NCBI GenBank assembly: GCA_002269645.1
Contig: NIVC01002902.1
Coordinates: 66,686 to 130,685, forward strand
Origin: Macrostomum lignano
Lineage: Eukaryota
Direction: 5' to 3'
DNA: 64,000 bases
This document shows positions 2,074 through 56,225 of this stretch, piece by piece. A program made the translations under genes and the position numbers. Position 1 is the first letter of the stretch; each line of letters begins with the position of its first letter. The notes beneath the pieces were generated by a model, which made no database searches, was not told where the DNA came from, and saw nothing but the letters and a program-made list of their open reading frames with translations.

Positions 2074-2956
2074 TTCGCTACCGTTGCAAGCACAGCAGCA
2101 TTTGAAGAACTATGTTAATACAGTTCCATCAGCACACTTTTTGACCCCTTGCTGATCTTGGATTTCATTTGCGTAGCTGGTGCGAAATTAATAATTAACT
2201 TTTGTGGTCTTGAACAGCAACTGCAGCAAAACACGTTGCGTGCTTTTGTGCGGCTCACAAGCTTCCTGTTACAACTAGGGCAGTCAATCACAAAAGCATG
2301 AAACTGAGTAGCCACAGCTTAGATGAAGAGAGCTGCCACCACATTCGATTCAACCACAAGGTTTTACAACCTATAGCCTCACTAAAATAGGGGTAATTTT
2401 GAATGTCGTGTATTTTCGAAACTGAGTTTATGGGACTTTGAAATTACTCGGATGTGTCTGCTGGTGCATCATACTGTAATCTCATGGAAAATCTGTACAT
2501 CAGTCAGGCGATTCGGTGACTCATCGATAGTTGGAACGAGCCGCAGAAGATGGTTTGTAATATTTCCCACAAGTTTCCAGGCTCAGCTGCAGGATATGAA
2601 ACAGCTTGAAAAGTGTTTTTAGAGCTCACGACCAACTTTATTTAGTCTTTACTCTGCAAATGCTGACTTGCAGGAGATTTTCTGTTATCTGCTTAGATCA
2701 GAACTCCCATCTCAAGCGGCATCTTCAAAGCCGATTCTCAGTGCTTGTAAAAATCGATCATTTTTCCAACTGGCAGTATAAAAAGCTAGGAAATGAGAAA
2801 CAAATGCATTCGCTATCCAATGACAAGCATCCAGTGTGCAGTATCCAATGACAAGGTAGAAGATAACGATATTAGTGCAAAGTCTGTCTCAAAAGCGCGA
2901 AACCTTGAAATGAAATTTGCCAATTCCGCAGCCTAATGAAAGTATGCGGAGAAGAT

Positions 2957-3742
2957 ATGCCTTTAGAAACTGTCTTCGCTGTCTATTCTCTGTTGCTCAT
3001 TTGGCTCTGGAGCTGCATGGCCTCTACAACTCCGAGTCCGCTGGGTTTTCAGTACATCAGCTGTTATGTGGACGGTCTCTATAACAGCAACCGAGACTTG
3101 CGAGGACTTCAAGGCATTGTCAAGTTCGGTCCGTACGCCACGGAACCGACTGTGCACGCCTTTGTGCAGAGGCCGGGCGAGATGACGCTGCAGCTGTGCG
3201 CCGACATCTGCAAGTGCGGCCGATTCCGCTACTTCGGGGCTCGGGCGGGCGAGTACTGCTGCTGCAGGTCGGCCTACGGCTCTATCGGAGCCGCTCCTGA
3301 CTCCCAGTGCAATTCTCAATGCGCCGGGAATGCATCTCAGGTGTGCGGTGGTGGCTATAGAAATTCAATCTATGAAATCATCTACCCGAAATGTAAGCGA
3401 ATGAAATGTTTGTCGGTATGGGTGACTTTGGCTTCGTGCACATGATGGGTTTGAATCGGGTGGGTATGTTAATAAGCATGAGCTCGTAATATCAAATCAC
3501 CATGATGCTAACCAGATAAAAACATTTCGAAGAAGCTGGCAGCTGCATCGATGCCCAACATGAGCAGGGCTCAGAGCTCCATCACTCACAGCAGTTTCCC
3601 AGCCAGAGTTGAATTCGAGTGCAGCGCCGCCTGCCACAGCAGCCCGAGCTGCCTGGGCAGCGCCTTCTCGCCATCAGGCCGGATGTGCCGCCTGTCCGAG
3701 GAGTTGGCCAGCGAGTTCGAGTACGTCTGGATGAAGCCGTGA
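2957..3742 (+). CDS. Secreted WSC-domain + PAN/apple-like protein, copy A (exons 2957-3392, 3516-3742)
   Basis: Hydrophobic signal-like N-terminus and WSC cysteine pattern (YISCYVD...MTLQLCADIC...YFG...CCC...CNSQCAGNASQVCGG). Phase-1 intron GTAAGC 3393 to AG 3515 joins in frame to a PAN-like CxxxC..C..C exon. Start could be 2936. Confidence 0.85.
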
Positions 3743-4650: not shown

Positions 4651-5204
4651 GGTGACTGTAGGGATGGTGACTGTAGGGATGGTGACTGTAGGGATGGTGA
4701 CTATAGGGATGGTGACTGTGGGGATGGTGACTGTAGGGATGGTGACTGTAGGGATGGTGACTGTAGGGATGGTGACTGTAGGGATGGTGACTGTAGGGAT
4801 GGTGACTGTGGGATGGTGACTGTGGGGATGGTGACTGTAGGGATGGTGACTGTAGGGATGGTGACTGTAGGGATGGTGACTGTAGGGATGGTGACTGTAG
4901 GGATGGTGACTGTGGGATGGTGACTGTGGGATGGTGACTGTGGGGATGGTGACTGTAGGGATGGTGACTGTGGGGGATGGTGACTGTAGGGATGGTGACT
5001 GTGGGATGGTGACTGTAGGGATGGTGACTGTAGGGATGGTGACTGTAGGAATGGTGACTGTGGGGATGGTGACTGTAGGGATGGTGACTGTGGGGGATGG
5101 TGACTGTAGGGATGGTGACTGTGGGATGGTGACTGTAGGGATGGTGACTGTAGGGATGGTGACTGTAGGGTAGGTGACTGTAGGGATGGTGACTGTAGGA
5201 ATGG
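4651..5204. repeat. ~15-bp minisatellite (ggtgactgtagggat)n, ~37 units
   Basis: Direct tandem repeat with 14-16 bp variants; absent from copy B. Confidence 0.97.
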
Positions 5205-5904
5205 GCCGCAAGGCAGAGAGTACAGCCCTGCACTTTGAACTAAACAAACGCGCGGTCACATGACAAAAGAGGGGAGAGGGTCAGCCTGCTCTTGGCAATG
5301 AACTAAGAGCAGGCTGAGCGGAGAGACTCAGACACTGAAAGCGAGAACGCAGCGAAAAAAGGACGGGGAGGGAGAAAGGGAAGCTGCGACCAGCGGCAGC
5401 CAACAGCTCAGGACAGGCGCGGGAAACAGCTGACTAATTAAGTGGGGCACCTAACAGTAACTATTGCTCACTTTACTATCTTCTGTTCTTAAAGATTCCT
5501 TAAAAGAAAGCATTTTAATACACTGGCCTCCAACGGCCCTATAATGAGTGTGAGGCTCATATCTCGAAATTCTCTCTGTACCGCAAATTATTCAAGACAA
5601 ACTTTTATAGTCCAACAAGCAAGCAGGTGAGTTTGACAAAATGCAGAGTAATGCATAGTTTGAGTAGGGCAGGGTTATCGCTTGAGCAGTTTTTTTCAGC
5701 GCCGTTGTTAGGCAACCATATCGCCCCCCCATGCATTGCTCGAGTCAACTGTGTCACGCGTTCGCAGGCTGCTGGCTTGGCCTTCAAACCTCAGCTTTGT
5801 TATCTGCTATTTAGTGCAGAGCTGGTCTGGCTTGATGGTCCTGGTCAAGACAGGAGGTGCTGTTTTTCGCTTCGATGTAAGCACTTCGCCATTGCTTACA
5901 AGCC

Positions 5905-6570
5905 GCCGTGACTGACATCTGCCACTCTGACAGCAGCCGTGACTGACATCTGCCACTCTGACAGCAGCCGTGACTGACACCTGCCACTCTGACAGCAGCC
6001 GTGACTCACATCTGCCACTCTGACAGCAGCCGTGACTGACATCTGCCACTCTGACAGCAGCCGTGACTGACATCTGCCACTCTGACAGCAGCCGTGACTC
6101 ACATCTGCCACTCTGACAGCAGCCGTGACTGACATCTGCCACTCTGACAGCAGCCGTGACTGACATCTGCCACTCTGACAGCAGCCGTGACTGACATCTG
6201 CCACTCTGACAGCAGCCGTGACTGACACCTGCCACTCTGACAGCAGCCGTGACTCACATCTGCCACTCTGACAGCAGCCGTGACTGACATCTGCCACTCT
6301 GACAGCAGCCGTGACTGACATCTGCCACTCTGACAGCAGCCGTGACTGACACCTGCCACTCTGACAGCAGCCGTGACTGACATCTGCCACTCTGACAGCA
6401 GCCGTGACTGACATCTGCCACTCTGACAGCAGCCGTGACTGACATCTGCCACTCTGACAGCAGCCGTGACTGACATCTGCCACTCTGACAGCAGCCGTGA
6501 CTGACATCTGCCACTCTGACAGCATCCGTGACTGACATCTGCCACTCTGACAGCAGCCGTGACTGACATC
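5905..6570. repeat. 31-bp minisatellite (gtgactgacatctgccactctgacagcagcc)n, ~21 units
   Basis: Direct tandem repeat just upstream of the polypyrimidine tract preceding the ankyrin exon. Confidence 0.97.
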
Positions 6571-6728: not shown

Positions 6729-9700
6729 ATAGGCCAAAACCTCAGCAGCCGTCGGGCCGTCACCAGCGGCAACATCCGGGCAGTGAGAGCTCATGTGCGG
6801 CTTCGACCGGGACAAACACGGAAGACCCGCTTTTGCATAGAGAATGCTCGACTGGCTGTATGGCATCGTCAGTGGGAAGTCGTCAAGTTTCTCGTGCCAC
6901 AAGTCGCTGACCAAGCAAACAGAGATCGCTGCTGCATCGACGCTGCCGACTCTGCTGCAAGAAATGGTCAGTGGGAAGTCGTCAAGTTTCTCGTGTCACA
7001 AGTCGCTGACCAAGCAAACAGAGATCGCTGCTGCATCGATGCTGCCGAATCTGCTGCAAGAAATGGTCAGTGGGAAGTCGTCAAGTTTCTCGTGTCACAA
7101 GTCGCTGACCAAGCAAACAGAGATCGCTGCTGCATCGATGCTGCCGAATCTGCTGCAAGAAATGGTCAGTGGGAAGTCGTCAAGTTTCTCGTGTCACAAG
7201 TCGCTAACCAAGCAAGCAGAGATCAGTGCTGCATCGACGCTGCGGAATCTGCAGCAACAAATCGTCAGTGGGAAGTCGTCAAGTTTCTCGTGTCACAAGT
7301 CGCTGACCAAGCAAACACAGATCGCTGCTGCATCGACGCTGCAAAATTTGCTGCAGGATATGGTCACTTAAAAGTCGTCAAGTTTCTCGTGCCACAAGTC
7401 GCTGACCAAGCAAACAGAGATCGCTGCTGCATCGACGCTGCCGACTCTGCTGCAAGAGATGGTCACTTAGAAGTCGTCAAGTTTCTCGTGTCACAAGTCG
7501 CTGACCAAGCAAACAGAGATCGCTGCTGCATCGACGCTGCCAAATCTGCTGCAAGATATCGTCAGTGGGAAGTCGTCAAGTTTCTCGTGTCACAAGTCGC
7601 TGACCAAGCAAACAGAGATCGCTGCTGCATCGACGCTGCCAAATCTGCTGCAATATGTGGTCACTTAGTAGTCGTCAAGTTTCTCGTGCCACAAGTCGCA
7701 AACCAAGCAAACAGAGATCGCTGCTGCATCGACGCTGGCAAATCTGCTGCAAGATATCGTCAGTGGGAAGTCGTCAAGTTTCTCGTGTCACAAGTCGCTG
7801 ACCAAGCAAACAGAGATCGCTGCTGCATCGACGCTGCAAAATTTGCTGCAGGATATGGTCACTTAAAAGTCGTCAAGTTTCTCGTGCCACAAGTCGCTGA
7901 CCAAGCAAACAGAGATCGCTGCTGCATCGACGCTGCCGACTCTGCTGCAAGAAATGGTCAGTGGGAAGTCGTCAAGTTTCTCGTGTCACAAGTCGCTGAC
8001 CAAGCAAACAGAGATCGCTGCTGCATCGATGCTGCCGAATCTGCTGCAAGAAATGGTCAGTGGGAAGTCGTCAAGTTTCTCGTGTCACAAGTCGCTGACC
8101 AAGCAAACAGAGATCGCTGCTGCATCGATGCTGCCGAATCTGCTGCAAGAAATGGTCAGTGGGAAGTCGTCAAGTTTCTCGTGTCACAAGTCGCTAACCA
8201 AGCAAGCAGAGATCAGTGCTGCATCGACGCTGCGGAATCTGCAGCAACAAATCGTCAGTGGGAAGTCGTCAAGTTTCTCGTGTCACAAGTCGCTGACCAA
8301 GCAAACACAGATCGCTGCTGCATCGACGCTGCAAAATTTGCTGCAGGATATGGTCACTTAAAAGTCGTCAAGTTTCTCGTGCCACAAGTCGCTGACCAAG
8401 CAAACAGAGATCGCTGCTGCATCGACGCTGCCGACTCTGCTGCAAGAGATGGTCACTTAGAAGTCGTCAAGTTTCTCGTGTCACAAGTCGCTGACCAAGC
8501 AAACAGAGATCGCTGCTGCATCGACGCTGCCAAATCTGCTGCAAGATATCGTCAGTGGGAAGTCGTCAAGTTTCTCGTGTCACAAGTCGCTGACCAAGCA
8601 AACAGAGATCGCTGCTGCATCGACGCTGCCAAATCTGCTGCAATATGTGGTCACTTAGTAGTCGTCAAGTTTCTCGTGCCACAAGTCGCAAACCAAGCAA
8701 ACAGAGATCGCTGCTGCATCGACGCTGGCAAATCTGCTGCAAGATATCGTCAGTGGGAAGTCGTCAAGTTTCTCGTGTCACAAGTCGCTGACCAAGCAAA
8801 CAGAGATCGCTGCTGCATCGACGCTGCAAAATTTGCTGCAGGATATGGTCACTTAAAAGTCGTCAAGTTTCTCGTGCCACAAGTCGCTGACCAAGCAAAC
8901 AGAGATCGCTGCTGCATCGACGCTGCCGACTCTGCTGCAAGAAATGGTCAGTGGGAAGTCGTCAAGTTTCTCGTGTCACAAGTCGCTGACCAAGCAAACA
9001 GAGATCGCTGCTGCATCGATGCTGCCGAATCTGCTGCAAGAAATGGTCAGTGGGAAGTCGTCAAGTTTCTCGTGTCACAAGTCGCTGACCAAGCAAACAG
9101 AGATCGCTGCTGCATCGATGCTGCCGAATCTGCTGCAAGAAATGGTCAGTGGGAAGTCGTCAAGTTTCTCGTGTCACAAGTCGCTAACCAAGCAAGCAGA
9201 GATCAGTGCTGCATCGACGCTGCGGAATCTGCAGCAACAAATCGTCAGTGGGAAGTCGTCAAGTTTCTCGTGCCACAAGTCGCTGACCAAGCAAACAGAG
9301 ATCGCTGCTGCATCGACGCTGCCCACTCTGCTGCAAGAAATGGTCAGTGGGAAGTCGTCAAGTTTCTCGTGTCACAAGTCGCTGACCAAGCAAACAGAGA
9401 TCGCTGCTGCATCAAAGCTGCTGAATCTGCTGCAAGAAATGGTCAATTAGAGGCTGTAAAGTTCCTCATCTCGTGTCTCTCAAGTCCGGATCAGAAAGCG
9501 AATCTGCATTTCCATTGCGCAGTCGCGGCTTGCTCTTGTCTTCGCAAAGATGTCGTAACCTTTCTCGGCCTCGAGCCCGACTGGCTCTTCCAATCCAGCT
9601 CCATCCTCAGCTTCACTGCAGCAATGGCTATCGAAGGCAGGAACTCTGTTCTCAACGACACCCTCTCTCGAATGCAGCCAGCTCACATCACACAGCTGCT

Positions 9701-12700
9701 CCGTCTTTCCATCTCTCAAAGACACGTCGCTCTTGCTGCCACCTTGATCAATGATGAGCGAGTCAGCACAGAGCATGTCGATCTGCCAGACAGCACTGGA
9801 GCCACTGCTCTCATGCTGGCAGCTGATGCAGGTCATCACGAGCTCATTGAGAAACTCATCGATCTCGGTGCGTCAGTGCGTGCTGAAGACAGTCAGGGTC
9901 GGACTGCTCTGTCACGAGCGTGCGAAGCCGGTCACGTGCGAGCAGCCAAAGCTCTGATGGACAGAGAAGCGGATGCGAGTAATCGAGACGGTAAGGGTCA
10001 GACGTGTGCTCAGGTGGCAGAGCGATTTGAGCAGCGGCAGGTGCTACGGCTGCTGGATCTCAGTGGAGCGGGGTGAGTGCAACGAGAATTTCACAGTTCT
10101 TTTCAGTATAGTATTGTGTTTTACTTGTGTTTTATTCTTTAGTCTTTTGGAATGTTTTTCCTGCTGGCCAATCCTGCTGGTCTTTTCACTACATTAGCTT
10201 CATTGCGTTTCATGCCTCTGCAATTGCCGTCTTTTCTTCTTAAAAGAAAAGTTCCAAATCCCTGCTGGCAGACAGGATGAGCAGCCAAGCCCAGTTCGCG
10301 CATCTCTTGCTCACTGTCTTCTTTCTCTCGGTCATCTGCTGCTGCCCGCCTCTCCCAGTACACAACAATATGTTGTGTACTCTAACAGTACAATATGAGA
10401 ACCCTGGCTTTCCTATCCGCATTGCAGAAGCCCAGAGGCCGGGCAGGCAGCCGCTCACGGCTTGGATTCAAGGCTTCATCGGTGAGTCTGACCGGTACGG
10501 CTTTCACTGCCGCATTGCGCCTTCCATCAGGCTGGCAGCTTGGGGCAGAAATTGCAGCGAATCTCAGGAGGGTTGAGATTGGGTTGGACTGAGTTCTGCA
10601 GCAGCTGCACTCGCAGCTCTCCTGCTTGAGATGCCAGTCTGAGTGCTGCAGCAGCTGCACTCTCGGCTCTCCTGCTTGAGATGCCAGTCTGAGTGCTGCA
10701 GCAGCTGCACTCTCAGCTCTCCTGCTTGAGATGCCAGTCTGAGTGCTGCAGCAGCTGCACTCTCGGCTCTCCTGCTTGAGATGCCAGTCTGGCACTCTCA
10801 GCTCTCCTGCTTGAGATGCCAGTCTGAGTGCTGCAGCAGCTGCACTCTCGGCTCTCCTGCTTGAGATGCCAGTCTGAGTGCTGCAGCAGCTGCACTCTCA
10901 GCTCTCCTGCTTGAGATGCCAGTCTGAGTGCTGCAGCAGCTGCACTCTCGGCTCTCCTGCTTGAGATGCCAGTCTGAGTGCTGCAGCAGCTGCACTCTCG
11001 GCTCTCCTGCTTGAGATGCCAGTCTGGCACTCTCAGCTCTCCTGCTTGAGATGCCAGTCTGAGTGCTGCAGCAGCTGCAGTCTCAGCTCTCCTGCTTGAG
11101 ATGCCAGTCTGAGTGCTGCAGCAGCTGCACTCTCAGCTCTCCTGCTTGAGATGCCAGTCTGGGTGCTGCAGCAGCTGCACTCTCAGCTCTCCTGCTTGAG
11201 ATGCCAGTCTGAGTTCTGCAGCAGCTTCACTCTCAGCTTTCCTACTTGAGATGCCAGTCTGAGTGCTTGTTCTGTCCATCCAACTCTGAGCAACTCGGAT
11301 CATTGCAGGCTCTCAAACGACTCCCAGCAAGACACGCGCCTGAGCGAGGAGCTGTATCGACTGCTCAACGATGCGGGGTTCACCTGGCAGAGAGCAAAGT
11401 GTCAGCAGATACTGGCTGACTGGCTGGAAGGAGTCGCTCGAGTCCTCACACAGGATCACAGGCAGATGACGGGCAGCTACGCAGAGGGCTGGGCCAACAG
11501 TCTGGTGCAAGTGAACGGCAGGACAGCTGCAGACTCGGACATTGACTGGACTGTGCTGGTTGCTGGGCAAGAGTTCCATCTGGAAGGTGGCTGCGTTGGA
11601 AAAAAAAGTCGGTTGAAATCCTGCAGAGACGCCACTCGTCTGAAGGTCACGGAAGGCCACGCACAGGTGGCAGTGGGAGCAGGTAAGTGAGGCTGAGTAA
11701 ATCATACGAAAACGACGAGCATCAATCAAACAGTAACTTAAATCAAATATTTTTCATATTTTTCTGAATAATATCAAATGAATACTTTCTCCTTCTGTTC
11801 CTCCAGGCGCATCTACAAAAATACTTTTCTCCATTCAGTAATAACAGTAGTAGCACTGACACGGGAGCAGAACAAAGTCAATTAACAAAATCAAGCAGTT
11901 TCAAACCAACCCATGTTTTTCACTCCCCTCAAAGCGACTTTCCTCTTATTGCCCTCTGCAGGCAGCCAACCTGCAGCCACAGCCACGGCGTGCGGTGTGC
12001 GACCTGCACAGGACACATGCCATGCGATCGACTGCTGCAGCAGTTTCTGTGAGGACAGATATAAAAAACTGCTTTCATTCGCTTTTCATGTTCACCTCGT
12101 TCGGGCGACCAGACCGAGCTCGACCAACGAGCTCAGAGTGAGCTTCAGCTTCCATGAGAAATACATCATGAGAGAGCTGAGCACAGTCCAGGGCCAGCTG
12201 TTCACACTCATCAAGTTCATCTTCAAGAAACACTTGCCACTCACTCTGGAGACACCTGGACTCAAGACCTACCATGCAAAGACTCTGCTCTTCACAATGT
12301 TGGAGAAGCATGGCACATATCCTGAAACTGAGGCTTGGCAGCCCCACAATCTGATCGCTCTGTTAAAGGAGTGTCTTGACATGATGCTGAGCTTCATCGA
12401 CTCGAGCAGCTCGCCCGATGAGTGCATGCCGCACTTCTTCATGTCCGACGCTCCGCTCTACTTCAAGAACGCTGGAATCGGCGGCGACTTCGACAACACA
12501 AAGGCGAGGGTTCGAGACCGACTTTTTGAGCTGAGAAGCGACATCAGCGGAGTGGTCGAGCAGTTGAGGAGACACGTGGGACCTCTGCAGTCAGAGAAGT
12601 TCTACTTTCACATGTTCACTCTGCTGCCTCTGACAGCGCCGCCTGCTGTCACGGAGATCAGGAAAGGAATTTGGAGTTCAGAAATGTACTACAAGTTCGC

Positions 12701-13385
12701 AGACGTGTACAGTGTGGTGCACCAGTGTGTGAGCGAGCTGCAGTCGGAATCGAGCGACAGAGACATCCTGATGAGGCAGCTCAGTCTCCTGCAAAATAAT
12801 TGGCTGCAGTGGTGCAGGTGCGCCGCCTTGAGCATGACCGCCATGGCGCATTTGAAGTTCGGAGAATCTGAGGAGGCTGAGAGACTCGCGATGGAGCTGC
12901 AGAGACATCAGGTCGAGTCAGGGTTGAAGCCACAAGATATTCAAGGGTCTGAATTCAGCCCAAGAAAATTGCCAAAAGACTCAGACTGGGCGTGGAGGTT
13001 CTGCCTCCCCTGCGACTCTCCGCCTTGCTTCCCATTCCTTCCCGAATTCACGCAGACTCTGTTCACAGCCAGACTGTCGCAGCCTCTCTCCTCCCACCTG
13101 TACGTGAACTTCCGCTGCCTGAGCTGGAGTCTCCAAGCTGAGCTGCTCCGCAATCGCGCACCTGCAATCGCATTCGATCATTGGATTGAGCAGCTGCTTG
13201 GAGACCCGGACTTGGAGGAGCTGCTCACTCTGGCTCACTACAGCGACTGCCGCGAGCACGTGGAGCTCAGCCTGCAGCAGATGGAGATGATCGAGAAAGA
13301 GAGACGCGTCGCCATGGAGACGCAGGACGAGGAGAAGATCGGCTGGGTCAGGCAGAAGCTGGAGAGACTTGATGCAGCAGCTTGA
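6729..13385 (+). CDS. Ankyrin-repeat / Mab-21 (cGAS-like nucleotidyltransferase, cGLR-type) fusion gene, copy A; exons 6729-10072, 10428-10481, 11309-11682, 11962-13385 (~1731 aa)
   Basis: Donors GTGAGT (10073), GTGAGT (10482), GTAAGT (11683) and pyrimidine-rich CAG acceptors (10427, 11308, 11961) give phases 2/2/1 and an unbroken frame. NTase motifs TGSYAEG and DSDID plus QDTCHAI; Mab-21-like LRVSFSFHEK, LKTYHAKTLLF, MPHFF. The codon matching the copy-B ATG is ATA, so the true start is uncertain. Confidence 0.82.
6870..9480 (+). repeat. Coding 99-bp (33-aa) divergent ankyrin-like tandem array, 26 full units plus a partial, with a 990-bp higher-order period
   Basis: Consensus QWEVVKFLVSQVADQANRDRCCIDAAESAARNG; AAxxGHLEVVKFLV matches the ankyrin core. 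Units 2-11 recur as 12-21, and 2-4 as 22-24. Confidence 0.9.
10589..11266. repeat. 50-bp intronic minisatellite (with 35-bp short variants) in intron 2 of ANK-cGLR copy A
   Basis: ctgagtgctgcagcagctgcactctcagctctcctgcttgagatgccagt repeated, e.g. 10681 vs 10731. Confidence 0.95.
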
Positions 13386-13579
13386 GTTTAACTCGTAATT
13401 TTGTAGGCTTCTCTGGCTTTTGCGCGAGTTTGTAAAGAAGTTGTACCGTACATATTGTGTGGCTTTAAATATTGTGTGTACATGCTCATAAATTTTAGGC
13501 ACATACTCCCAGAATCAGCTCAATCAGTCTGAAAATTGATTTCATCACCTACTTTTATTATGCACCCATGTACCCCGCA

Positions 13580-13899
13580 GTGACTGACAGCCTGACAGCT
13601 CCCTCATGAACAATCACTGACTGACAGCCTGACAGCTCTCTCATGAACATTCAGTCACTGACAGGCTGACAGCTCCCTCATGAACATTCAGTGACTGAGA
13701 GCCTGACAGCTCCCTCATGAGCATTCAGTGACTGACAGCCTGACAGCTCCCTCATTAACATTCACTGACTGACAGCCTGACAGCTCCCTCATGAACATTC
13801 AGTGACTGACAGGCTGACAGCTCCCTCATGAACATTCAGTGACTGACAGCCTGACAGCTCCCTCATGAACATTCAGTGACTGACAGCCTGACAGCTCCC
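13580..13899. repeat. 37-bp minisatellite (gtgactgacagcctgacagctccctcatgaacattca)n, ~8.5 units
   Basis: Direct tandem repeat; only one partial unit at the matching site in copy B (~32140). Confidence 0.93.
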
Positions 13900-14438: not shown

Positions 14439-15302
14439 TCTCCTCTCCTCTCCTCTCCTCTCCTCTCCTCTCCTCTCCTCTCCTCTCCTCTCCTCTCCTC
14501 TCCTCTCCTCTCTTCTCCTCTCCTCTCCTCTCCTCTCCTTTCCTCTCCTCTCCTCTCCTCTTCTCTTCTCTGCTCTGCTCTGCTCTCCTCTCCTATCCTC
14601 TCCTCTCCTCTCCTCTCCTCTCCTCTCCTCTCCTCTCCTCTCCTCTCCTCTCCTCTCCTCTCCTCTCCTCTCCTCTCCTCTCCACTCCTCTCCTCTCCTC
14701 TCCTCTCCTCTCCTTTCCTCTCCTCTCCTCTCCTCTCCTCTCCTATCCTCTCCTCTCCTCTCCTCTCCTCTCCTCTCCTCTCCACTCCTCTCCTCTCCTC
14801 TCCTCTCCTCTCCTCTCCTCTCTTCTCCTCTCCTCTCCTCTCCTCTCCTTTCCTCTCCTCTCCTCTCCTCTTCTCTTCTCTGCTCTGCTCTGCTCTCCTC
14901 TCCTATCCTCTCCTCTCCTCTCCTCTCCTCTCCTCTCCTCTCCTCTCCTCTCCTCTCCTCTCCTCTCCTCTCCTCTCCTCTCCACTCCTCTCCTCTCCTC
15001 TCCTCTCCTCTCCTCTCCTTTCCTCTCCTCTCCTCTCCTCTCCTCTCCTCTCCTATCCTCTCCTCTCCTCTCCTCTCCTCTCCACTCCTCTCCTCTCCTC
15101 TCCTCTCTGCTCCTCTCCTCTTCTCTCCTTTCCTCTCCTCTCCTCTCCTCTCTTCTCTTCTCCTCTTCTCTCCTCTCCTCTTCTCTCCTCTCCTCTCCGC
15201 TCCTCTCCGCTCCTCTCCGCTCCTTTCCTCTCCTCTCCTCTCCTCTCCTCTCCTCTCCTCTCCGCTCCTCTCCTCTCCTCTTCTCTCCTCTCCGCTTCTC
15301 TC
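14439..15302. repeat. (CTCCT)n pentanucleotide microsatellite
   Basis: About 860 bp of CTCCT with point variants. Confidence 0.98.
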
Positions 15303-16644: not shown

Positions 16645-17409
16645 ATGCGGCTGTCAAACGGTCTCGCTGTTTGCCTCGCCCTGACGTGGGCGAGCCTTCA
16701 AGGCTGCGCGGCTTCCGAGCCCGTCCAGCCACTCGAGTTTCGCTACGTTGGCTGCTATAAAGACGGCGACAGTCGCGATCTCAAAGGACTTTTAGGAATT
16801 TTTCACTATGGCCCCTACGAAATGTCAACATTTTCTCCGGGCTTCGTTGAAGGCCGATTCACAATGACTCTGGAAATGTGCAACCAGATTTGCTCCTACG
16901 GTCGGTTCCGCTACTTCGGAACTCAGTACTTTTACTTCTGCGGCTGCAGCTCATCCATCGGATCCTTCAGCAAAGCGGCAGAGGAGGAATGCGATTCCAG
17001 TTGCCATGGAAACTCGCTGCAGGTGTGCGGCGGCGCAATGAGAAACTCGATTTACGAAGTCACCTACTCACCGAGTAAGATGAGCGGCAGATTCAGTCTG
17101 CTTCAAGTGTTTGAGTCAATCAGTGGTTTTACAAAATTTGATTCCAACCCACCCACAGCTCGATCGAAGCTGACGAAGCTGCCGATTGCGTCCGTTCCCA
17201 GCATCTCCGCCGACTCCTCGTACGGCTCCATCACCCACAGCTCCACGGTGACGGGCACCGCCATCCAGTGCGCTGCCGCCTGCCAGCGCAGCCCGGACTG
17301 CCTTGGCTGCGCCTTCGTGGCCTCGAGCCGCGTGTGCCGCCTGCTGAAGTTCTTCGCTGTGCCCGCCGAGGTGGCCAGTGAAGTTGAGCACGTCTGGATG
17401 AAGCTGTGA
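16645..17409 (+). CDS. Secreted WSC + PAN/apple-like protein, paralog 2 (probable exons 16645-17074, 17159-17409)
   Basis: Signal-like N-terminus, WSC motif (YVGCYKD...MTLEMCNQIC...CHGNSLQVCGG) and C-terminal CAAAC..C..C. A probable 84-bp phase-1 intron (GTAAGA..CACAG) sits at the same position as in the paralogs. Confidence 0.88.
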   Translation: MRLSNGLAVCLALTWASLQGCAASEPVQPLEFRYVGCYKDGDSRDLKGLLGIFHYGPYEMSTFSPGFVEGRFTMTLEMCNQICSYGRFRYFGTQYFYFCGCSSSIGSFSKAAEEECDSSCHGNSLQVCGGAMRNSIYEVTYSPSKMSGRFSLLQVFESISGFTKFDSNPPTARSKLTKLPIASVPSISADSSYGSITHSSTVTGTAIQCAAACQRSPDCLGCAFVASSRVCRLLKFFAVPAEVASEVEHVWMKL

Positions 17410-18330: not shown

Positions 18331-21300
18331 GACTTTGGGGCGCTTCTACTCGTATAGTGACTCTGGGGCGCTTCTACTCGTATAGTGACTCACTCTGGGG
18401 CGCTTCTACTCGTATAGTGACTCACTCTGGGGCGCTTCTACTCGTATAGTGACTCACTCTGGGGCGCTTCTACTCGTATAGTGACTCACTCTGGGCGCTT
18501 CTACTCGTATAGTGACTCACTCTGGGGCGCTTATACTCGTATAGTGACTCACTCTGGGGCGCTTCTACTCGTATAGTGACTCACTCTGGGGCGCTTCTAC
18601 TCGTATAGTGACTCACTCTGGGGCGCTTATACTCGTATAGTGACTCACTCTGGGGCGCTTCTACTCGTATAGTGACTCTGGGGCGCTTCTACTCGTATAG
18701 TGACTCTGGGGCGCTTCTACTCGTATAGTGACTCACTCTGGGGCGCTTCTACTCGTATAGTGACTCTGGGGCGCTTCTACTCGTATAGTGACTCACTCTG
18801 GGGCGCTTCTACTCGTATAGTGACTCTGGGGCGCTTCTACTCGTATAGTGATTCTGGGGCGCTTCTACTCGTATAGTGACTCACTCTGGGGCGCTTATAC
18901 TCGTATAGTGACTCACTCTGGGGCGCTTCTACTCGTATAGTGACTCACTCTGGGGCGCTTCTACTCGTATAGTGACTCACTCTGGGGCGCTTCTACTCGT
19001 ATAGTGACTCACTCTGGGGCGCTTCTACTCGTATAGTGACTCACTCTGGGGCGCTTCTACTCGTATAGTGACTCTGGGGCGCTTCTACTCGTATAGTGAC
19101 TCACTCTGGGGCGCTTCTACTCGTATAGTGACTCACTCTGGGGCGCTTCTACTCGTATAGTGACTTTGGGGTGCTTCTACTCGTATAGTGACTCACTCTG
19201 GGGCACTTCTACTCGTAAAGTGACTCTGGGGCGCTTCTACTCGTATAGTGACTCACTCTAGGGCACTTCTACTCGTATAGTGACTCTGGGGCGCTTCTAC
19301 TCGTATAGTGACTCACTCTGGGGCGCTTCTACTCGTATAGTGACTCACTCTGGGGCGCTTCTACTCGTATAGTGACTCTGGGGCGCTTCTACTCGTATAG
19401 AGACTCACTCTGGGGCGCTTCTACTCGTATAGTGACTCTGGGCGCTTCTACTCGTATAGTGACTCTGGGGCGCTTCTACTCGTATAGTGACTCACTCTGG
19501 GGCGCTTCTACTCGTATAGAGACTCTGGGGCGCTTTCTACTCGTATAGTGACTTTGGGGCGCTTCTACTCGTATAGAGACTCACTCTGGGGCGCTTCTAC
19601 TCGTATAGTGACTCACTCTGGGGCGCTTCTACTCGTATAGTGACTCTGGGGCGCTTCTACTCGTATAGTGACTCTGGGGCGCTTCTACTCGTATGGTGAC
19701 TCTGGGGCGCTTCTACTCGTATAGTGACTCACTCTGGGGCGCTTCTACTCGTATAGTGACTCTGGGGCGCTTCTACTCGTATAGTGATTCTGGGGCGCTT
19801 CTACTCGTATAGTGACTCACTCTGGGGCGCTTCTACTCGTATAGTGACTCTGGGGCGCTTCTACTCGTATAGTGATTCTGGGGCGCTTCTACTCGTATAG
19901 TGACTCACTCTGGGGCGCTTATACTCGTATAGTGACTCACTCTGGGGCGCTTCTACTCGTATAGTGACTCACTCTGGGGCGCTTCTACTCGTATAGTGAC
20001 TCACTCTGGGGCGCTTCTACTCGTATAGTGACTCACTCTGGGGCGCTTCTACTCGTATAGTGACTCACTCTGGGGCGCTTCTACTCGTATAGTGACTCTG
20101 GGGCGCTTCTACTCGTATAGTGACTCACTCTGGGGCGCTTCTACTCGTATAGTGACTCACTCTGGGGCGCTTCTACTCGTATAGTGACTTTGGGGTGCTT
20201 CTACTCGTATAGTGACTCACTCTGGGGCACTTCTACTCGTAAAGTGACTCTGGGGCGCTTCTACTCGTATAGTGACTCACTCTAGGGCACTTCTACTCGT
20301 ATAGTGACTCTGGGGCGCTTCTACTCGTATAGTGACTCACTCTGGGGCGCTTCTACTCGTATAGTGACTCACTCTGGGGCGCTTCTACTCGTATAGTGAC
20401 TCTGGGGCGCTTCTACTCGTATAGAGACTCACTCTGGGGCGCTTCTACTCGTATAGTGACTCTGGGGCGCTTCTACTCGTATAGTGACTCTGGGGCGCTT
20501 CTACTCGTATAGTGACTCACTCTGGGGCGCTTCTACTCGTATAGAGACTCTGGGGCGCTTTCTACTCGTATAGTGACTTTGGGGCGCTTCTACTCGTATA
20601 GAGACTCACTCTGGGGCGCTTCTACTCGTATAGTGACTCACTCTGGGGCGCTTCTACTCGTATAGTGACTCTGGGGCGCTTCTACTCGTATAGTGACTCT
20701 GGGGCGCTTCTACTCGTATGGTGACTCTGGGGCGCTTCTACTCGTATAGTGACTCACTCTGGGGCGCTTCTACTCGTATAGTGACTCTGGGGCGCTTCTA
20801 CTCGTATAGTGATTCTGGGGCGCTTCTACTCGTATAGTGACTCACTCTGGGGCGCTTCTACTCGTATAGTGACTCACTCTGGGGCGCTTCTACTCGTATA
20901 GTGACTCACTCTGGGGCGCTTCTACTCGTATAGTGACTCACTCTGGGGCGCTTCTACTCGTATAGTGACTCTGGGGTGCTTCTACTCGTATAGTGACTCA
21001 CTCTGGGGCACTTCTACTCGTAAAGTGACTCTGGGGCGCTTCTACTCGTATAGTGACTCACTCTAGGGCACTTCTACTCGTATAGTGACTCTGGGGCGCT
21101 TCTACTCGTATAGTGACTCACTCTAGGGCACTTCTACTCGTATAGTGACTCTGGGGCGCTTCTACTCGTATAGTGACTCTGGGGCGCTTCTACTCGTATA
21201 GTGACTCTGGGGCGCTTCTACTCGTATAGTGACTCTGGGGCGCTTCTACTCGTATGGTGACTCTGGGGCGCTTCTACTCGTATAGAGACTCACTCTGGGG

Positions 21301-21840
21301 CGCTTCTACTCGTATAGTGACTCTGGGGCGCTTCTACTCGTATAGTGACTCTGGGGCGCTTCTACTCGTATGGTGACTCTGGGGCGCTTCTACTCGTATA
21401 GAGACTCACTCTGGGGCGCTTCTACTCGTATAGTGACTCTGGGGCGCTTCTACTCGTATAGTGACTCTGGGGCGCTTCTACTCGCATAGAGACTCACTCT
21501 GGGGCGCTTCTACTCGTATAGTGACTCACTCTGGGGCGCTTCTACTCGTATAGTGACTCACTCTGGGGCGCTTCTACTCGTATAGAGACTATGGGGCGCT
21601 TCTACTCGTATAGTGACTCACTCTGGGGCGCTTCTACTCGTATAGAGACTCTGGGGCGCTTCTACTCGTATAGTGACTCTGGGGCGCTTCTACTCGTATA
21701 GTGACTCACTCTGGGGCGCTTCTACTCGTATAGAGACTCTGGGGCGCTTCTACTCGTATAGTGACTCTGGGGCGCTTCTACTCGTATAGTGACTCACTCT
21801 GGGGCGCTTCTACTCGTATAGTGACTCACTCTGGGGCGCT
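18331..21840. repeat. 28/32-bp minisatellite (tgact[cact]ctggggcgcttctactcgtatag-type), ~3.5 kb
   Basis: Two unit lengths differing by a 4-bp insert; rare variant units recur with ~1024-bp spacing (19165 vs 20189). Confidence 0.97.
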
Positions 21841-22582
21841 GCGGTCACTGCGGTTCCGCATGCTCTATCCGAGGAGAACAAGACTGCCCGCATCAATTGT
21901 GCCAAGCAAATTCGCAGGCTTTTTTACAACGAGGGGTGGAAAACTTTTGCGACAAGTACGTGGTGGAAGATGAGACGTGGGTGTACCTGAACAACACTGG
22001 CACAAAGCAAAACAACTGGTGCTGGCTTGGCCAAGGAGATCATCGGCCCCAGGTTGTCAGGCACTCGGTCGGGAATGCAAAGACAATGCTTCTGGTTGCT
22101 TTCACTCCAAGCAAGCGCTTCTCCATTGAATCCACAGCCCCGAAGCAAACTGTTGATGCAGATGGCATAGTTGAATTCATTCGGCACACGGGAGACCTAT
22201 GGCGTACTCTGAGGTCAAAGCCAATTCACCTGTCGGATGTTCTTTGGCAGTGGGACAATGCGCGACCTCACGTAGCCCGTTCTGTGCAGCAGTACGTGGA
22301 GTCCCGTGGAGTTCAGCTGGTGTTTCAGAGTCCTTACAACCCAGACTTCAATCTGTGCGACCGTTTTTTGTTCAGTTGGATGAAGAATGATTTCTCCAGG
22401 CGAGTATTCAGCGACCACAATGAATTTCGAGAAGCTGCGTTGCAGTGGGCAAGAGGCCTTGACGAAGATTGCTTAAAAAGAGAGGTTCAGCGACTCGTTG
22501 ACCATTGCCAAGCTGTAATCAATGCAAGGGGAGATTACATTACCAAGGGGACTTACATTTTTTACTTGAAAAGTAGTTGCTA
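21841..22582 (+). mobile_element. 5'-truncated mariner (DD34D) transposase remnant
   Basis: VPHAL in one frame, then a frameshift at a T-run to DETWVY, WDNARPH and SPYNPDFNLCD (34 residues between the second and third D), ending at GDY. The N-terminal part is absent. Right boundary approximate. Confidence 0.85.
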
Positions 22583-23704
22583 TCTGGATACGACTCAGCA
22601 AATACATTTTTCTAAATACGCCAACCCTCCCGACTGTCTCTGGAACAATGACCCTCTGCTTTCTTCAACTCCTCTTTTAGAGCTCCCATCATATTCTCTT
22701 TTAACTTTTAACAGGACACTTTTTCTTGGCCCGGCTCTCCGTGGGAAGAATCTGCTGCTGCACTGGTGGGTTGGGGATTCAAAGCCTCACTTGGCCTCAG
22801 AGCATCTCTTTCGTCCGTGATCTCGTCTCTTGGAGAACAAGGACTTTTGGCTTTCCCAATGGGGGAAACAGTAAGCCCAGCACTGTTTGGGCCGATTGCC
22901 GGATTAATAGACAAATTATACCTGTGCTGTCAGCTTCGAGATAAAATAATCATGGATAAGTCTCATTTTATAGTAACACATTTGGTATTTGAGTCCATGA
23001 GGCTGCTGTAAGCCAATTTGCTTGACAACTGGAACTGAGGAAACCACGGTAATAAGCTTTTGAGTCAGCAATATGGCAGCAGTTGGCTTGTCTACTCATT
23101 CCTTTCTCTATTAGCTCAGAGCTGCTTGTCTGTGTGAAGTCTTTTGTTACCTTTTGCCTCTCATTACTTGCTTGACTGGCTGAAAACATAGCTTACTCGT
23201 ATGCGAACCAAGGACTACTCAAGCATCTCAAGCAGCGGCAGAAGCCCCCGCACAAGACAACAACAGCTCAAATAATCTATAAGCTACTTGGCTCCTTCTT
23301 AGCTTCTAAAACTCAAAAAACAATGGAATCATGCGGCTGTCACTCAATCCCAACTTCCTCAGCCTCAAGGATCAGCCATTGTGTGAGCAGCTCCTTCACT
23401 TAGCTGTGAGGGGCTCAACAGCAGTGCAGATGCAATGCGTCTCTCTGCAAGCTGCAACTCAAGAAAAACCAATGCTGGTTCGTAAACTGCTGTTCGGTGC
23501 ATCTTTAGCGGCTGCAACTCCATCACCGGATGCTGGCAGGCGAACGCGGCCTCGATTCGCGCCCAAGCCCAGAAACGCACCTTAATGACGCTGTTTTAAA
23601 AGACCTGACGCATACTGTATTGTTTGTATTATTATTGTAGCTTTACAGGCTTTAGGCAACTGCGTGGGCTTTCTGATTACTTGAGTGTTACTGGGCAATT
23701 GTCA

Positions 23705-24017: not shown

Positions 24018-24912
24018 TTCGCAACCGTTGCTAGAACAGCAGCACTTGAAGAACTATGTTAATACAGTTCCATCAGCACACTTTTTGACCCCTTGCTGAT
24101 CTTGGATTTCCTTTGCGTAGCTGGTGCGAAATTAATGACCAACTTTTGTGGTCTTGAACAGCAACTGCAGCAAAACACGTTGCGTGCTTTTGTGCGGCTC
24201 ACAAGCTTCCTGTTACAACTGGGGCAGTCAATCACAAAAGCATGAAACTGAGTAGCCACAGCTTAGATGAAGAGAGTTGCCACCACATTCGATTCAATCA
24301 CAAGGTTTTACAACCTATAGCCTCACTAAAATAGGGGTAATTTTGAATGTCGTGTATTTTCGAAACTGAGTTCATGGGACTCTGAAAATAATCGGATGTG
24401 TCTGCTGGTGCATCATACTGTAATCTCATGGAAAATCTGTACATCAGTCAGGCGATTCGGTGACTCATCGATAGTTGGAACGAGCCGCAGAAGATGGTTT
24501 GTAATATTTCCCACAAGTTTCCAGGCTCAGCTGCAGGATATGAAACAGCTTGAAAAGTGTTTTTAGAGCTCGCGACCAACTGTATTGAGTCTTTACTCTG
24601 CAGAGGCTGACTTGCAGGAGATGCTCAAGAAAATTTTCTGTTATCTGCTTAGATCAGAACTTCCATCTCAAGCGGCATCTTCAAAGCCGATTCTCAGTGC
24701 TTGTAAAAAGCGATCATTTTTCCAACTGGCAGTATAAAAAGCTAGGAAATGAGAAACAAATGCATTCGCTATCCAATGACAAGCATCCAGTGTGCTGTAT
24801 CCAATGACAGGGTAGAAGATAACGATATTAGTGCAAAGTCTGTCTCAAAAGCGCGAAACCTTGAAATGAAATTTGCCAGTTCCGCAGCCTAATGAAAGCA
24901 TGCGGAGAAGAT

Positions 24913-25698
24913 ATGCCTTTAGAAACTGTCTTCGCTGTCCATTCTCTGTTGCTCATTTGGCTCTGGAGCTGCATGGCCTCTGCAACTCCGAGTCCGCTGG
25001 GTTTTCAGTACATCAGCTGTTATGTGGACGGTCTCTATAACAGCAACCGAGACTTGCGAGGACTTGAAGGCATTGTCAAGTTCGGTCCGTACGCCACGGA
25101 ACCGACTGTGCCCGCCTTTGTGCAGAGGCCGGGCGAGATGACGCTGCAGCTGTGCGCCGACATCTGCAAGTGCGGCCGATTCCGCTACTTCGGGGCTCGG
25201 GCGGGCGAGTACTGCTGCTGCAGGTCGGCCTACGGCTCTATCGGAGCCGCTCCTGACTCCCAGTGCAATTCTCAATGCGCCGGGAATGCATCTCAGGTGT
25301 GCGGTGGTGGCTATAGAAATTCAATCTATGAAATCATCTACCCGAAATGTAAGCGAATGAAATGTTTGTCGGTATGGGTGACTTTGGCTTCGTGCACATG
25401 ATGGGTTTGAATCGGGTGGGTATGTTAATAAGCATGAGCTCGTAATATCAAATCACCATGATGCTAACCAGATAAAAACATTTCGAAGAAGCTGGCAGCT
25501 GCATCGATGCCCAACATGAGCAGGGCTCAGAGCTCCATCACTCACAGCAGTTTCCCAGCCAGAGTTGAATTCGAGTGCAGCGCCGCCTGCCACAGCAGCC
25601 CGAGCTGCCTGGGCAGCGCCTTCTCGCCATCAGGCCGGATGTGCCGCCTGTCCGAGGAGTTGGCCAGCGAGTTCGAGTACGTCTGGATGAAGCCGTGA
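24913..25698 (+). CDS. Secreted WSC + PAN/apple-like protein, copy B (exons 24913-25348, 25472-25698)
   Basis: Near-identical to 2957-3742 (offset 21956), same intron, few amino-acid changes. Confidence 0.85.
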
Positions 25699-27575: not shown

Positions 27576-30500
27576 ATGGGCCAAAACCAAAGCCGACATC
27601 GGGTCGTCACCAGCAGCGTCACTATACGAACTGCTGCAAGAAATGGTAACTTAAAAGTCGTCAAGTTTCTCGTGTCACAAATCGCTGACCAAGAAAACAG
27701 AGATCGCTGCTGCATCAACGCTGCCGAATCTGCAGTAAAAAATCGTCAGTGGGAAGTCGTCAAGTTTCTCGTGCCACAAGTCTTTGCTGACCAAGCAAAC
27801 AGAGATCGCTGCTGCATCGAGGCTGCCGAATCTGCTGCAATATTTGATCAGTGGGAAGTCGTCAAGTTTCTCGTGCCACAAGTCGCTGACCAAGCAAACA
27901 GAGATCGCTGCTGCATCGACGCTGCCGAATCTGCAGTAAAAAATCGTCAGTGGGAAGTCGTCAAGTTTCTCGTGCCACAAGTCGCTGACCAAGCAAACAG
28001 AGATCGCTGCTGCATCGACGCCGCCAAATCTGCTGCAATAAATGGTCAGTGGAAAGTCGTCAAGTCTCTTATTTCGTGTCTCTCAAGTCCGGAACAGGGA
28101 GCGAATCTCCGTTTCCAATACGCAGTCAAGGCTTGCTCTTGTCTTCGCAAAGATGTCGTAACCTTTCTCGGCCTCGAGCCCGACTGGCTCTTCCAATCCA
28201 GCACCATCCTCAGCTTCACTGCAGCAATGGCCATCGAAGGCAGGAACTCTGTTCTCACTGACACCCTCTCTCGAATGCAGCCAGCTCACATCACACAGCT
28301 GCTCCGTCTCTCCATCTCTCAAAGACACGTCGCTCTTGCTGTCACACTGATCAATAAAAAGCGAGTCAGAAAAAAGCATGTCGATCTGCCAGACAGCACT
28401 GGAGCCACTGCTCTCATGCTGGCAGCTGATGCAGGTCATCACGAGCTCATTGAGAAACTCATCGACCTCGGTGCGTCAGTGCGTGCTGAAGACAGTCAGG
28501 GTCGGACTGCTCTGTCACGAGCGTGCGAAGCCGGTCACGTGCGAGCAGCCAAAGCTCTGATGGACAGAGGAGCGGATGCGAGTCATCGAGACGGTCAGGG
28601 TTAGACGTGTGCTCAGGTGGCAGAGCGATTTGAGCAGCGGCAGGTGCTACGGCTGCCGGATCTCAGTGGAGCGGGGTGAGTGCAACGAGAATTTCACAGT
28701 TCTTTTCAGTATAGTATTGTGTTTTACTTGTGTTTTATTCTTTAGTCTTTAGAAAAGTTCCAAATCCCAAAGACAGGATGAGCAGCCAAGCCCAGTTCGC
28801 GCATCTCTTGCTCACTGTCTTCTTTCTCTCGGTCATCTGCTGCTGCCCGCCTCTCCCTCCGCTTTTTGATTTTGCTACCTGAAAAAAAGCGTTAGTATCT
28901 TTATGAAGCTGCGGAACGTGAGCGCGGCAATACGTAACAATATAATATGAGTTTCCGACTTATTAAAGTGATTTTTGCCGCTTAAGAACCTCAGACTCAA
29001 CTGCTGTGAGAACCCTGGCTTTCCTATCCGCATTGCAGAAGCCCAGAGGCCGGGCAGGCAGCCGCTCACGGCTTGGATTCAAGGCTTCATCGGTGAGTCT
29101 GACCGGTTCGGTTTTCACTGCCGCATTGCGCCTTCCATCAGGCTGGCAGCTTGGGGCAGAAATTGCAGCGAATCTCAGGAGGGTTGAGATTGGGTTGGAC
29201 TGAGTTCTGCAGCAGCTGCACTCTCAGCTCTCCTGCTTGAGATGCCAGTCTGAGTGCTGCAGCAGCTGCACTCTCGGCTCTCCTGCTTGAGATGCCAGTC
29301 TGGCACTCTCAGCTCTCCTGCTTGAGATGCCAGTCTGAGTGCTGCAGCAGCTGCACTCTCGGCTCTCCTGCTTGAGATGCCAGTCTGAGTGCTGCAGCAG
29401 CTGCACTCTCGGCTCTCCTGCTTGAGATGCCAGTCTGAGTGCTGCAGCAGCTGCACTCTCAGCTCTCCTGCTTGAGATGCCAGTCTGAGTGCTGCAGCAG
29501 CTGCACTCTCAACTCTCCTGATTGTTTTGTCCAGCCAACCCTGACCAAATCACTCACACGCATCTCGCATCATTCCAGGCTCTCAGATGACTCCCAGCAA
29601 GACAGGCGCCTGAGCGAGGAGCTGCATCAGCTGCTCAGCGAGGCGGGATTCACCGAGCAGAGAGCAAAGTGTCAGCAGAGACTTGCTGACTGGCTGGAAG
29701 GAGTCGCTCGAGTCCTCACACAGGATGGCAGGCGGATGACGGGCAGCTACGCAGAGGGCTGGGCCAACAGTCTGGTGCAAGTGAACGGCAGGACAGCTGC
29801 AGACTCGGACATTGACTGGACTGTGCTGGTTGCTGGGCAAAAGTTCCATCTGGCAGGTGGCTGCAAAAGAAATACGGACTCCTGCAGAGACGCCACTCGT
29901 CTGAAGGTCACGGAAGGCCACGCACAGGTGGCAGTGGGAGCAGGTGAGTGAGGCTGAGTAAATCATACGATCAAACGACGAGCATCAATCAAACAGTAAC
30001 TTAAATCAAATATTTTTCATATTTTTCTGAATAATATCAAATGAATACTTTCTCCTTCTGTTCCTCTTATTGCCCTCTGCAGGCAGCCAACCTGCAGCCA
30101 CAGCCACGGCGTGCGGTGTGCGGCCTGCACAGGACACGTGCCATGCGATCGACTGCTGCAGCAGTTCCTTTGAGGACAGAATTGAAAAACTTTTTCCAAA
30201 CGATTATAAGAAAGTTCACCTCGTTAGGGCGACCAGACCGAGCTCGACCAACGAGCTCAGAGTGAGCTTCAGCTTCCATGAGAAACGCATCATGAGAAAC
30301 CTGAGCACAGTCCAGGGCCAGCTGTTCACACTCATCAAGTTCATCTTCAAGAGACACTTGCCGCTCACTCTGGACACACCTGGACTCAAGACCTACCATG
30401 CAAAGACTCTGCTCTTCACAATGCTGAAGAAGCATGGTACATATCCTGAAACTGAGGCTTGGCAGCCCCACAATCTGATCGCTCTGCTCAAGGAGTCTCT

Positions 30501-36910: not shown

Positions 36911-36977
36911 CTTGAGCTAAAACTCAGCTGCAGATGCGTCTGTTAATTTTACCGCCGTGGTTTCTTAAGCGTTGACA

Positions 36978-55681: not shown

Positions 55682-56225
55682 ATGGCCATCTAAAAGGATT
55701 GCTCACAATTACTATTAAGACGAAATAGTATGCACACTGTCAATCTCTGGGGTTGGGTGTTGCAGCTGCTCAATCGTGATAAATAAATAAAATGCACACT
55801 GTCAACTTACACGCATGTGTAAATACAGAAAAATATATCCTTTCTATCGGATTGTCATTGAATAACAAGTTATCGATGGAAAAGCACAAGTGTGTGTGTG
55901 TGTGTGCGTTTGTGCGTGATCTATGATACGCATTCTCGAGCAGAACATCGCAGCTTGTACGTCTATGTTAAAAAAGTACATGTGCCACTTAGGCGTCTAT
56001 GACGCATACAGGTAAGCCTAAGCGGTTGGGATTAAAGCCCGAAAAATAATTCACGCTTCAAATCAAAGTCAAAACTAAATCTTTCTTCATCTACAGCAGC
56101 CACCGCGTGTCAACAATAAAGATAATCTTTCTTCATCTACAGCAGCCACCGCGTGTCAACAATAAAGATAAGTGCATTACTATTTGTCAATTAAATCAAT
56201 TATAAACTGTGCTAATCAAATTATA

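Follow-up and report, generated by a model that had tools for sequence, protein, structure and literature searches.

Two tandem ankyrin cGAS-like receptor genes, each with a probably disabling substitution, in the flatworm Macrostomum lignano

Structure of the two gene copies

The stretch of DNA analysed here, called the window, comprises 64,000 nucleotides (nt) from Macrostomum lignano (GenBank assembly GCA_002269645.1, contig NIVC01002902.1, positions 66,686 to 130,685 of the forward strand), and positions are counted from its first letter. It carries two related genes on the plus strand, copy A and copy B, in which an ankyrin domain is joined by splicing to a nucleotidyltransferase of the cGAS/Mab-21 type, as in ankyrin-bearing cGAS-like receptors (cGLRs). 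An earlier note on this DNA, made from the letters alone, had read copy A as such a single spliced gene. This was confirmed, since the exons join in frame and paralogues cross identical junction peptides, and all coordinates given there were recovered (the donor at 10073, the exons, TGS, DID and the third Asp at 12012).

The ankyrin open reading frame (ORF) of copy A has 1097 codons (6783-10076 in the ORF list, open from 6714), and the TGA that closes it sits within a splice donor, GG/GTGAGT, at 10070-10078. Splicing of 6783/6729-10072, 10428-10481, 11309-11682 and 11962-13385 gives one frame of 1713 codons with a terminal TGA at 13383-13385; every exon boundary has the form AG...GT and all introns are GT-AG. 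Exon 1 (6729-10072) encodes the N-terminus and the entire ankyrin domain and is followed by intron 1 (10073-10427), which can be aligned with copy B in part only. Exon 2 (10428-10481) is a mini-exon of 54 nt for a flexible linker, which has low confidence in the structure model and a homologous mini-exon in the locus of the paralogue P0006. After intron 2 (10482-11308), exon 3 (11309-11682) contributes the spine helix and the N-lobe of the nucleotidyltransferase with TGS (11469-11477) and DID (11538-11546). Beyond intron 3 (11683-11961), exon 4 (11962-13385) carries the codon of the third Asp (12012-12014) and encodes the Mab-21 C-lobe as well as a helical C-terminal domain specific to the family, and it ends the frame with the stop codon.

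Copy B lies approximately 18-21 kb downstream and spans 27576-31551. Its exon 1 (27576-28675) starts with an ATG (MGQNQS...) and encodes an ankyrin domain with about four tandem units of 99 nt. It is followed by a 54-nt exon 2 (29039-29092), an exon 3 with the nucleotidyltransferase N-lobe (29579-29943) and an exon 4 with the C-lobe, the C-terminal domain and the stop codon (30083-31551). All six splice sites are still GT-AG in copy B and divergence was found in all three introns, both as had been noted before. The middle part of intron 1 is non-homologous between the copies, owing to an insert. Intron 2 measures 827 nt in copy A versus 486 nt in copy B, and both contain a 50-nt minisatellite (10589-11267, about 680 nt, in A; 29218-29524, about 310 nt, in B), the copy number of which accounts for most of this length difference. 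Intron 3 is 279 nt long in A versus 139 nt in B, by deletion. The two genes are tandem duplicates from a large, lineage-specific ankyrin-cGLR family of M. lignano.

Other members of this family have the same layout. P0006 (PAA68676.1) and P0001 (BOX15_Mlig000394g2) share with the window copies the domain order of ankyrin, linker, nucleotidyltransferase and helical domain, the same three intron positions and 83-87% identity over the C-terminal 616 amino acids. Annotated M. lignano paralogues have the junction peptides ...SGAG/SPEA...HR/LSDDSQQD... and ...GAG/SQPA... in common with copy A. The genomic locus of P0006 (same assembly, NIVC01001377.1; located by tblastn) has its introns at the positions seen in copy A, with an ankyrin exon, an 84-nt intron, a mini-exon of 14 residues, a 99-nt intron, an N-lobe exon ending in ...VGAG and, after an intron of about 17 kb, the exon starting with SQPA.... 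The M. lignano annotation, including P0006, was built from genome-guided RNA sequencing assemblies (PMC5730564). As the P0006 annotation spans the ankyrin and the enzyme halves, these are one mRNA in this paralogue. The splice model is thus not due to chance, because paralogue proteins cross the same junctions and P0006 shares the intron positions.

It might be argued that the ankyrin and Mab-21 ORFs are two separate genes, joinable in appearance only, as a stop codon terminates the former and the downstream ORF (11913-13385) starts with its own ATG. However, this ATG falls in intron 3 and the first residues of that ORF are not conserved in paralogues, the mini-exon preserves the frame in both copies, and transcript-derived paralogue annotations cross the junctions, which leaves two separate genes extremely improbable. 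For this exact locus, the splice model is a prediction from the sequence and from paralogues. The four-exon gene structure and the identity as ankyrin cGLRs are assigned with good confidence.

The ankyrin array

The array of copy A consists of 26 tandem units of exactly 99 nt (33 amino acids) each, located at 6870-9443 on the plus strand according to the unit table. Tandem Repeats Finder placed it at 6868-9445 with a period of 99, 26.0 copies and no indels. Pfam assigned Ank_2 (E 8e-38) and Ank (E 3e-22) to the array and Ank_2 (E 5e-27) to the terminal repeats of exon 1. Units 2-11 are identical to units 12-21, and thus form a higher-order repeat of ten units (990 nt) in two copies at 6969-8948 without a single mismatch; the sequence of units 12-14 recurs once more in units 22-24 (8949-9245). 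In contrast to the paralogues, copy A therefore has a far longer near-identical array with a perfect higher-order repeat, which either arose very recently, by unequal crossing-over or another duplication event, or was created by the assembly.

The array had been called variable, which holds for its length, as this differs sharply between the copies (26 versus about four units). Unequal crossing-over between near-identical 99-nt units would shift array length and would account for this difference. Between units, substitutions cluster at unit residues 1-3, 10, 27-28 and 31-33. These variable codons appear to match the canonical ankyrin binding surface in part only, with the beta-hairpin positions invariant.

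The earlier note had further described a rearrangeable sensor, and this was not borne out: the data show a change of copy number in the germline by unequal crossing-over, or an assembly artefact, and nothing somatic or programmed. In its strong form, the proposal would make the array a programmed recognition module that rearranges somatically, and it could draw on the different repeat numbers of neighbouring paralogues and on the concentration of unit differences in few codons. The window, however, showed neither recombination signals nor donor cassettes nor any flanking machinery, and a perfect 990-nt repeat is also produced by ordinary unequal crossing-over, replication slippage or misassembly. 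With the binding surface only partly covered by the variable codons, a somatic module is very hard to believe, and a germline change in unit number is preferred.

Nucleotidyltransferase domain and relation to the published family

The enzyme half was analysed with the C-terminal 616 amino acids of copy A as query and with an AlphaFold2 model that drew on 18 sequences of the family. The model (predicted local distance difference test, pLDDT, 79; predicted template modelling score 0.81) shows the bilobal cGAS/Mab-21 fold and runs from the spine helix through a beta-strand, GS and a low-confidence loop to a beta-strand beginning with DID. Foldseek searches of the PDB at E <= 0.001 gave 50 matches, all of which were cGAS, MAB21L1 or MB21D2 with a probability of 1.0 each and target-normalised template modelling scores of about 0.45-0.54. 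The fold is thus held in common with human and mouse cGAS, Drosophila cGLR1 and human MB21D2, and likewise with MAB21L1/MAB21L2. In Pfam, Mab-21_C (PF20266) matched residues 231-306 of the query (12225-12452, plus strand) above its cut-off (27.9 versus 24.1 bits). The structure prediction and Pfam run that had been suggested for the spliced protein therefore agree with a cGAS/Mab-21 domain.

At the sequence level the relation is distant, with merely 12-18% identity between the window family and animal cGAS-like receptors. A phmmer search of PDB sequences with the query gave no match, so that a family profile was needed; this profile found cGLR1 (8gjy, E 3e-7), cGAS (about 1e-4) and MAB21L1 (2e-4), all within the C-lobe and in the part that Mab-21_C matched. 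MAB21L1 is thereby among the top structural as well as the top profile matches. The C-lobe motifs RVSFSF..EK and GLKTYHAKT align with cGLR1 and cGAS. When the family profile was compared by hhalign with the canonical Mab-21 protein P0177, again the C-lobe alone was aligned, so the catalytic N-lobe is unconfirmed by sequence comparison alone.

The GS, DxD and third D residues pointed out in the earlier note are all present and conserved across paralogues, which carry the same GS, DSDID and AQD residues, and their order is the GS...DxD...D active-site pattern of cGAS-like receptors. The published cGLR motif reads h[QT]GS X8-20 [DE]h[DE]h X50-90 h[DE]h (Li et al. 2023, PMC9980059). Copy A fits its first two elements with MTGS, a spacer of 20 residues and DIDW, and this combination is conserved in eight of 11 aligned family members; together with the Asp at 12012 it is kept down to paralogues just 47% identical. 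The third Asp of copy A aligns in P0033 with the M-D-L of RPAMDLVPAF. A strict pattern search for the third acidic residue succeeds solely through an I-D-C, six residues after the Q-D-T that contains the third Asp, and the Asp of I-D-C is not conserved, as paralogues carry Q, E, H, K or W in its place. The stretch MTGSYAEGWANSLVQVNGRTAADSDIDWTV is near-invariant down to the 47%-identical paralogues, which argues for a functional site.

The spacer between GS and DxD has 12 residues in human cGAS, compared with 20 in copy A. Between GS and DID, residues 82-94 of the C-terminal part (approximately 11496-11534) form a 13-residue stretch, SLVQVNGRTAADS, which is highly conserved in the family, is modelled at a pLDDT below 50 and is an insertion relative to cGAS. 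The window family also differs from animal cGAS-like receptors by its extra ankyrin and C-terminal helical domains.

The combination of these domains is already on record. In a word-indexed protein search, 39 relatives were found, nearly all of them M. lignano proteins named hypothetical that already carry Ank and Mab-21_C domains in Pfam, the best being 86% identical. When 1.84 billion representative proteins were searched with a profile, 1115 matched at E <= 1e-3 and 89 at E <= 1e-30, and all strong matches bearing a name were from M. lignano. Four distant matches were scanned against Pfam, and all four had Mab-21 (PF03281) and Mab-21_C, with weak TPR in two. The search for further members recommended earlier has thus uncovered a large M. 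lignano family. Some cGLRs were described to bear ankyrin or TPR modules, and ANK is listed as a domain architecture in the bioRxiv version of the same study (Li et al. 2023, PMC9980059). Among the constructs in its Table S3, five are from M. lignano (rows 89-93), of which row 93 is PAA68676.1/BOX15_Mlig016402g1, that is P0006, 83% identical to copy A, and row 92 belongs to the P0012 clade (PMC9980059). The fusion was therefore not hidden, as it had been called, since the ankyrin-Mab-21 architecture is annotated in dozens of M. lignano proteins and described by Li et al. 2023; the accompanying caution that such fusions might already be in databases was justified. The window genes are additional members of the published ankyrin-cGLR family and not a new architecture. 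Beyond Li et al. 2023, no literature on flatworm cGLRs was found.

From the domain order, a mechanism may be proposed for intact members. Exon 1 would supply the N-terminus (MGQNQS...) and the ankyrin domain, and the 54-nt mini-exon a flexible linker. By homology, the ankyrin domain might bind a ligand or partner, for which a protein is more probable than a nucleic acid, and this binding would control the cGAS-type active site (GS, DxD, D), which in turn would produce a nucleotide second messenger. As regards the ligand, nucleic-acid-sensing cGLRs were reported to have isoelectric points above 8.5 (Li et al. 2023, PMC9980059), whereas those of the window protein are lower (7.7 for the enzyme core, 6.0 for the whole C-terminal part). 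That ankyrin sensing controls the synthesis of a nucleotide signal is an evenly balanced judgement, and the gating of a second-messenger enzyme in the earlier note went too far.

Several points weigh against an enzyme. The N-lobe has no match to Pfam PF03281, the GS-to-DxD spacer of 20 residues is as long as the published motif allows and falls where the model has low confidence, and the conserved third Asp (12012, 61 residues past DIDW) stands in Q-D-T and not between hydrophobic residues. In addition, Li et al. 2023 (PMC9980059) cloned five M. lignano proteins for an enzyme screen, and the animals named as sources of the 15 active enzymes described are insects, anemones, molluscs, hydras and corals, with no flatworm group among them. 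The Mab-21 domain could instead be a non-enzymatic structural or nucleotide-binding scaffold like MAB21L1 or MiD49/51, with an ankyrin domain that merely recruits partners. The divergence of the N-lobe, the long insertion between GS and DxD, the absence of flatworms from the groups with active enzymes and the place of MAB21L1 among the top structural matches would all suit a scaffold. On the other hand, according to Li et al. 2023 (PMC9980059), no functional active site is predicted for Mab21L1/2/3, whereas GS, DxD, the third Asp and all of MTGSYAEGWANSLVQVNGRTAADSDIDWTV are retained here and are among the best-conserved parts of a fast-evolving family (omega about 0.7). Many cGLRs also seem inactive in vitro, probably since the ligand is unknown, and the M. 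lignano constructs start inside the spine helix or shortly ahead of it (Li et al. 2023, PMC9980059), so they are without the ankyrin domain. A scaffold is for these reasons regarded as unlikely, and a ligand-controlled nucleotidyltransferase is the preferred reading.

With respect to a downstream receptor, one word-indexed search for STING was made with the human cyclic-dinucleotide-binding domain. Its matches came from vertebrates and a single hemichordate and none from a flatworm, but its sensitivity is too low for this to count as absence. M. lignano is not among the species with cGLR/STING counts tabulated by Li et al. 2023 (PMC9980059).

Two further regions of the protein deserve mention. 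The C-terminal domain of about 265 amino acids (12588-13382, plus strand) is conserved among the family members, and a separate AlphaFold2 model (pLDDT 80.5) shows it as helical, similar to TPR and including a small beta element; it had no significant match in Foldseek, where IFIT1 and TPR proteins came closest (best E 0.13). At the other end, the N-terminus MGQNQS is conserved in copy B (27576-27593) and in P0006. It fits the N-myristoylation consensus (Gly2, Ser6), and the receptors may thus be membrane-anchored by a putative N-myristoylation.

Probably disabling substitutions, surroundings and family turnover

Each copy departs from the paralogues by one disabling change, the lack of a start codon in copy A and a premature stop in copy B. 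The family start is ATG GGC CAA AAC (MGQN...) in copy B and P0006. In a three-way DNA alignment of copy A, copy B and the P0006 locus, copy A has ATA (6729-6731) at this position, and its next in-frame ATG encodes the methionine of MAIEG near the end of exon 1. Rescue of copy A by an upstream splice acceptor and a spliced-leader AUG was considered and seems unlikely, as inspection of the sequence showed no AG dinucleotide nearby that lies in frame. An upstream WSC-domain ORF as a 5' exon, for which the database model P0041 offers a precedent, is unlikely too, as copy B, P0006 and other paralogues begin at the conserved ATG. In copy B, the frame is interrupted by a TAG (28602-28604; CAG in copy A) that falls within the last ankyrin repeat and ahead of the enzyme domain. 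A single transition underlies each lesion (ATG>ATA in A, CAG>TAG in B). With one disabling substitution per copy, these genes may not make full protein; as assembled, neither copy is an intact translatable gene, which concerns these copies and not the family.

The most probable reading is that copies A and B were inactivated recently or are null copies that still segregate, in a family of fast turnover, unless the lesions are base errors of the assembly. That both are true pseudogenes is somewhat favoured. Against inactivation it has to be considered that both lesions, being single substitutions, could be assembly errors or alleles, and that the substitution rates do not tell decay from fast evolution. 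A comparison of the two copies gave a dN/dS (omega) of 0.80 overall, with 0.66 for exon 4 and 0.95 for the enzyme core, and this range resembles the 0.72 of either copy versus the intact paralogue P0006. As the whole family evolves fast, omega does not distinguish pseudogene decay from this general pace.

Both copies might then be functional, as two working receptors with very different array lengths, and the lesions assembly base errors or rare alleles. In favour of this, a single substitution is the sole defect of either copy, the frames being otherwise open over 1713 and 995 codons and none of the splice sites lost, and M. lignano assemblies were described as difficult, repeat-rich and redundant (PMC5730564). 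However, each lesion is a clean transition at a position that otherwise aligns well, and no product of copy A or of copy B is on record in the protein collection. Errors in long-read assemblies are typically indels and not substitutions, which further counts against an assembly origin. Two working receptors are accordingly considered improbable, and null copies remain the favoured reading.

The surroundings of the two genes are rich in other ORFs and repeats. WSC-domain ORFs were found at 2936-3445, 24892-25401, 16645-17409 and 39497-39970, one of which also has a PAN domain, and one WSC ORF lies upstream of each cGLR copy within the duplicated segment. P0041 merges WSC, ANK, Mab-21_C and RING, and the adjacency of WSC and cGLR thus recurs elsewhere in the genome. 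Two further ORFs (34535-35659 and 36972-37715) have signal-peptide-like N-termini, neither with a Pfam match at E <= 0.001, and the latter shows a C-type-lectin-like WLGG...WxW...EPSN pattern. Together with the WSC and PAN ORFs, they give the impression of a window with many secreted proteins that bind carbohydrates.

Mobile elements are represented by a series of ORFs at 53378-57325 (plus strand) for a PIF1-like helicase (E 9e-63), Pif1 2B/UvrD_C and an RPA OB-fold, by sequence the usual content of a Helitron-type transposon. Exact look-ups of the products of 53378-54889, 27576-28604 and 39497-39970 retrieved no recorded protein. An ORF at 21897-22820, just upstream of the start of the duplicated segment of copy B (about 22999), has a weak DDE_3 transposase match (26.3 bits, under the cut-off of 28.6). 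Long minisatellites are located at 1506-2073, 4651-5204, 5901-6570, 13578-13899, 14439-15302, 18332-21840, 42385-43669 and 51977-52634. Their periods are 5, 15, 16, 30, 31, 32 and 37 nt; several are common to both duplicated segments with differing copy numbers, and a 31-nt array stops about 160 nt upstream of each cGLR start. This fits the description of the M. lignano genome, 15% of which are simple and tandem repeats (PMC5730564).

Among the related gene models, P0045, P0192 and P0046 (BOX15_Mlig012150g1, BOX15_Mlig018330g1 and BOX15_Mlig026614g1) have in their annotation a caspase domain (Peptidase_C14, E about 1e-25) at the C-terminus, which follows the cGLR and a second ankyrin block. 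These could be real cGLR-caspase fusions or merged models of polycistronic transcripts.

For genome annotation, the locus is of some value as a reading made without tools gave the correct four-exon model of a gene absent from protein collections. The biological yield of the window itself is two probably dead or null members added to a recognised ankyrin-cGLR family, with no new question by itself. It puts the family's rate of change on display, with arrays of 26 versus about four units, one inactivating hit per copy and an omega of about 0.7. The wider family merits study, and M. lignano is a transgenic laboratory model. More speculatively, and in our view quite improbably, the ankyrin cGLRs may form a large, fast-diversifying repertoire of sensors for ligands other than nucleic acids (about 89 clusters at 50% identity), with specificity from the shuffling and expansion of ankyrin units by unequal crossing-over. 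If so, the window would be a snapshot of this birth and death, in a family whose phylum is reported to have lost most cGLR signalling elsewhere, and some members may connect directly to caspase domains, instead of or besides STING.

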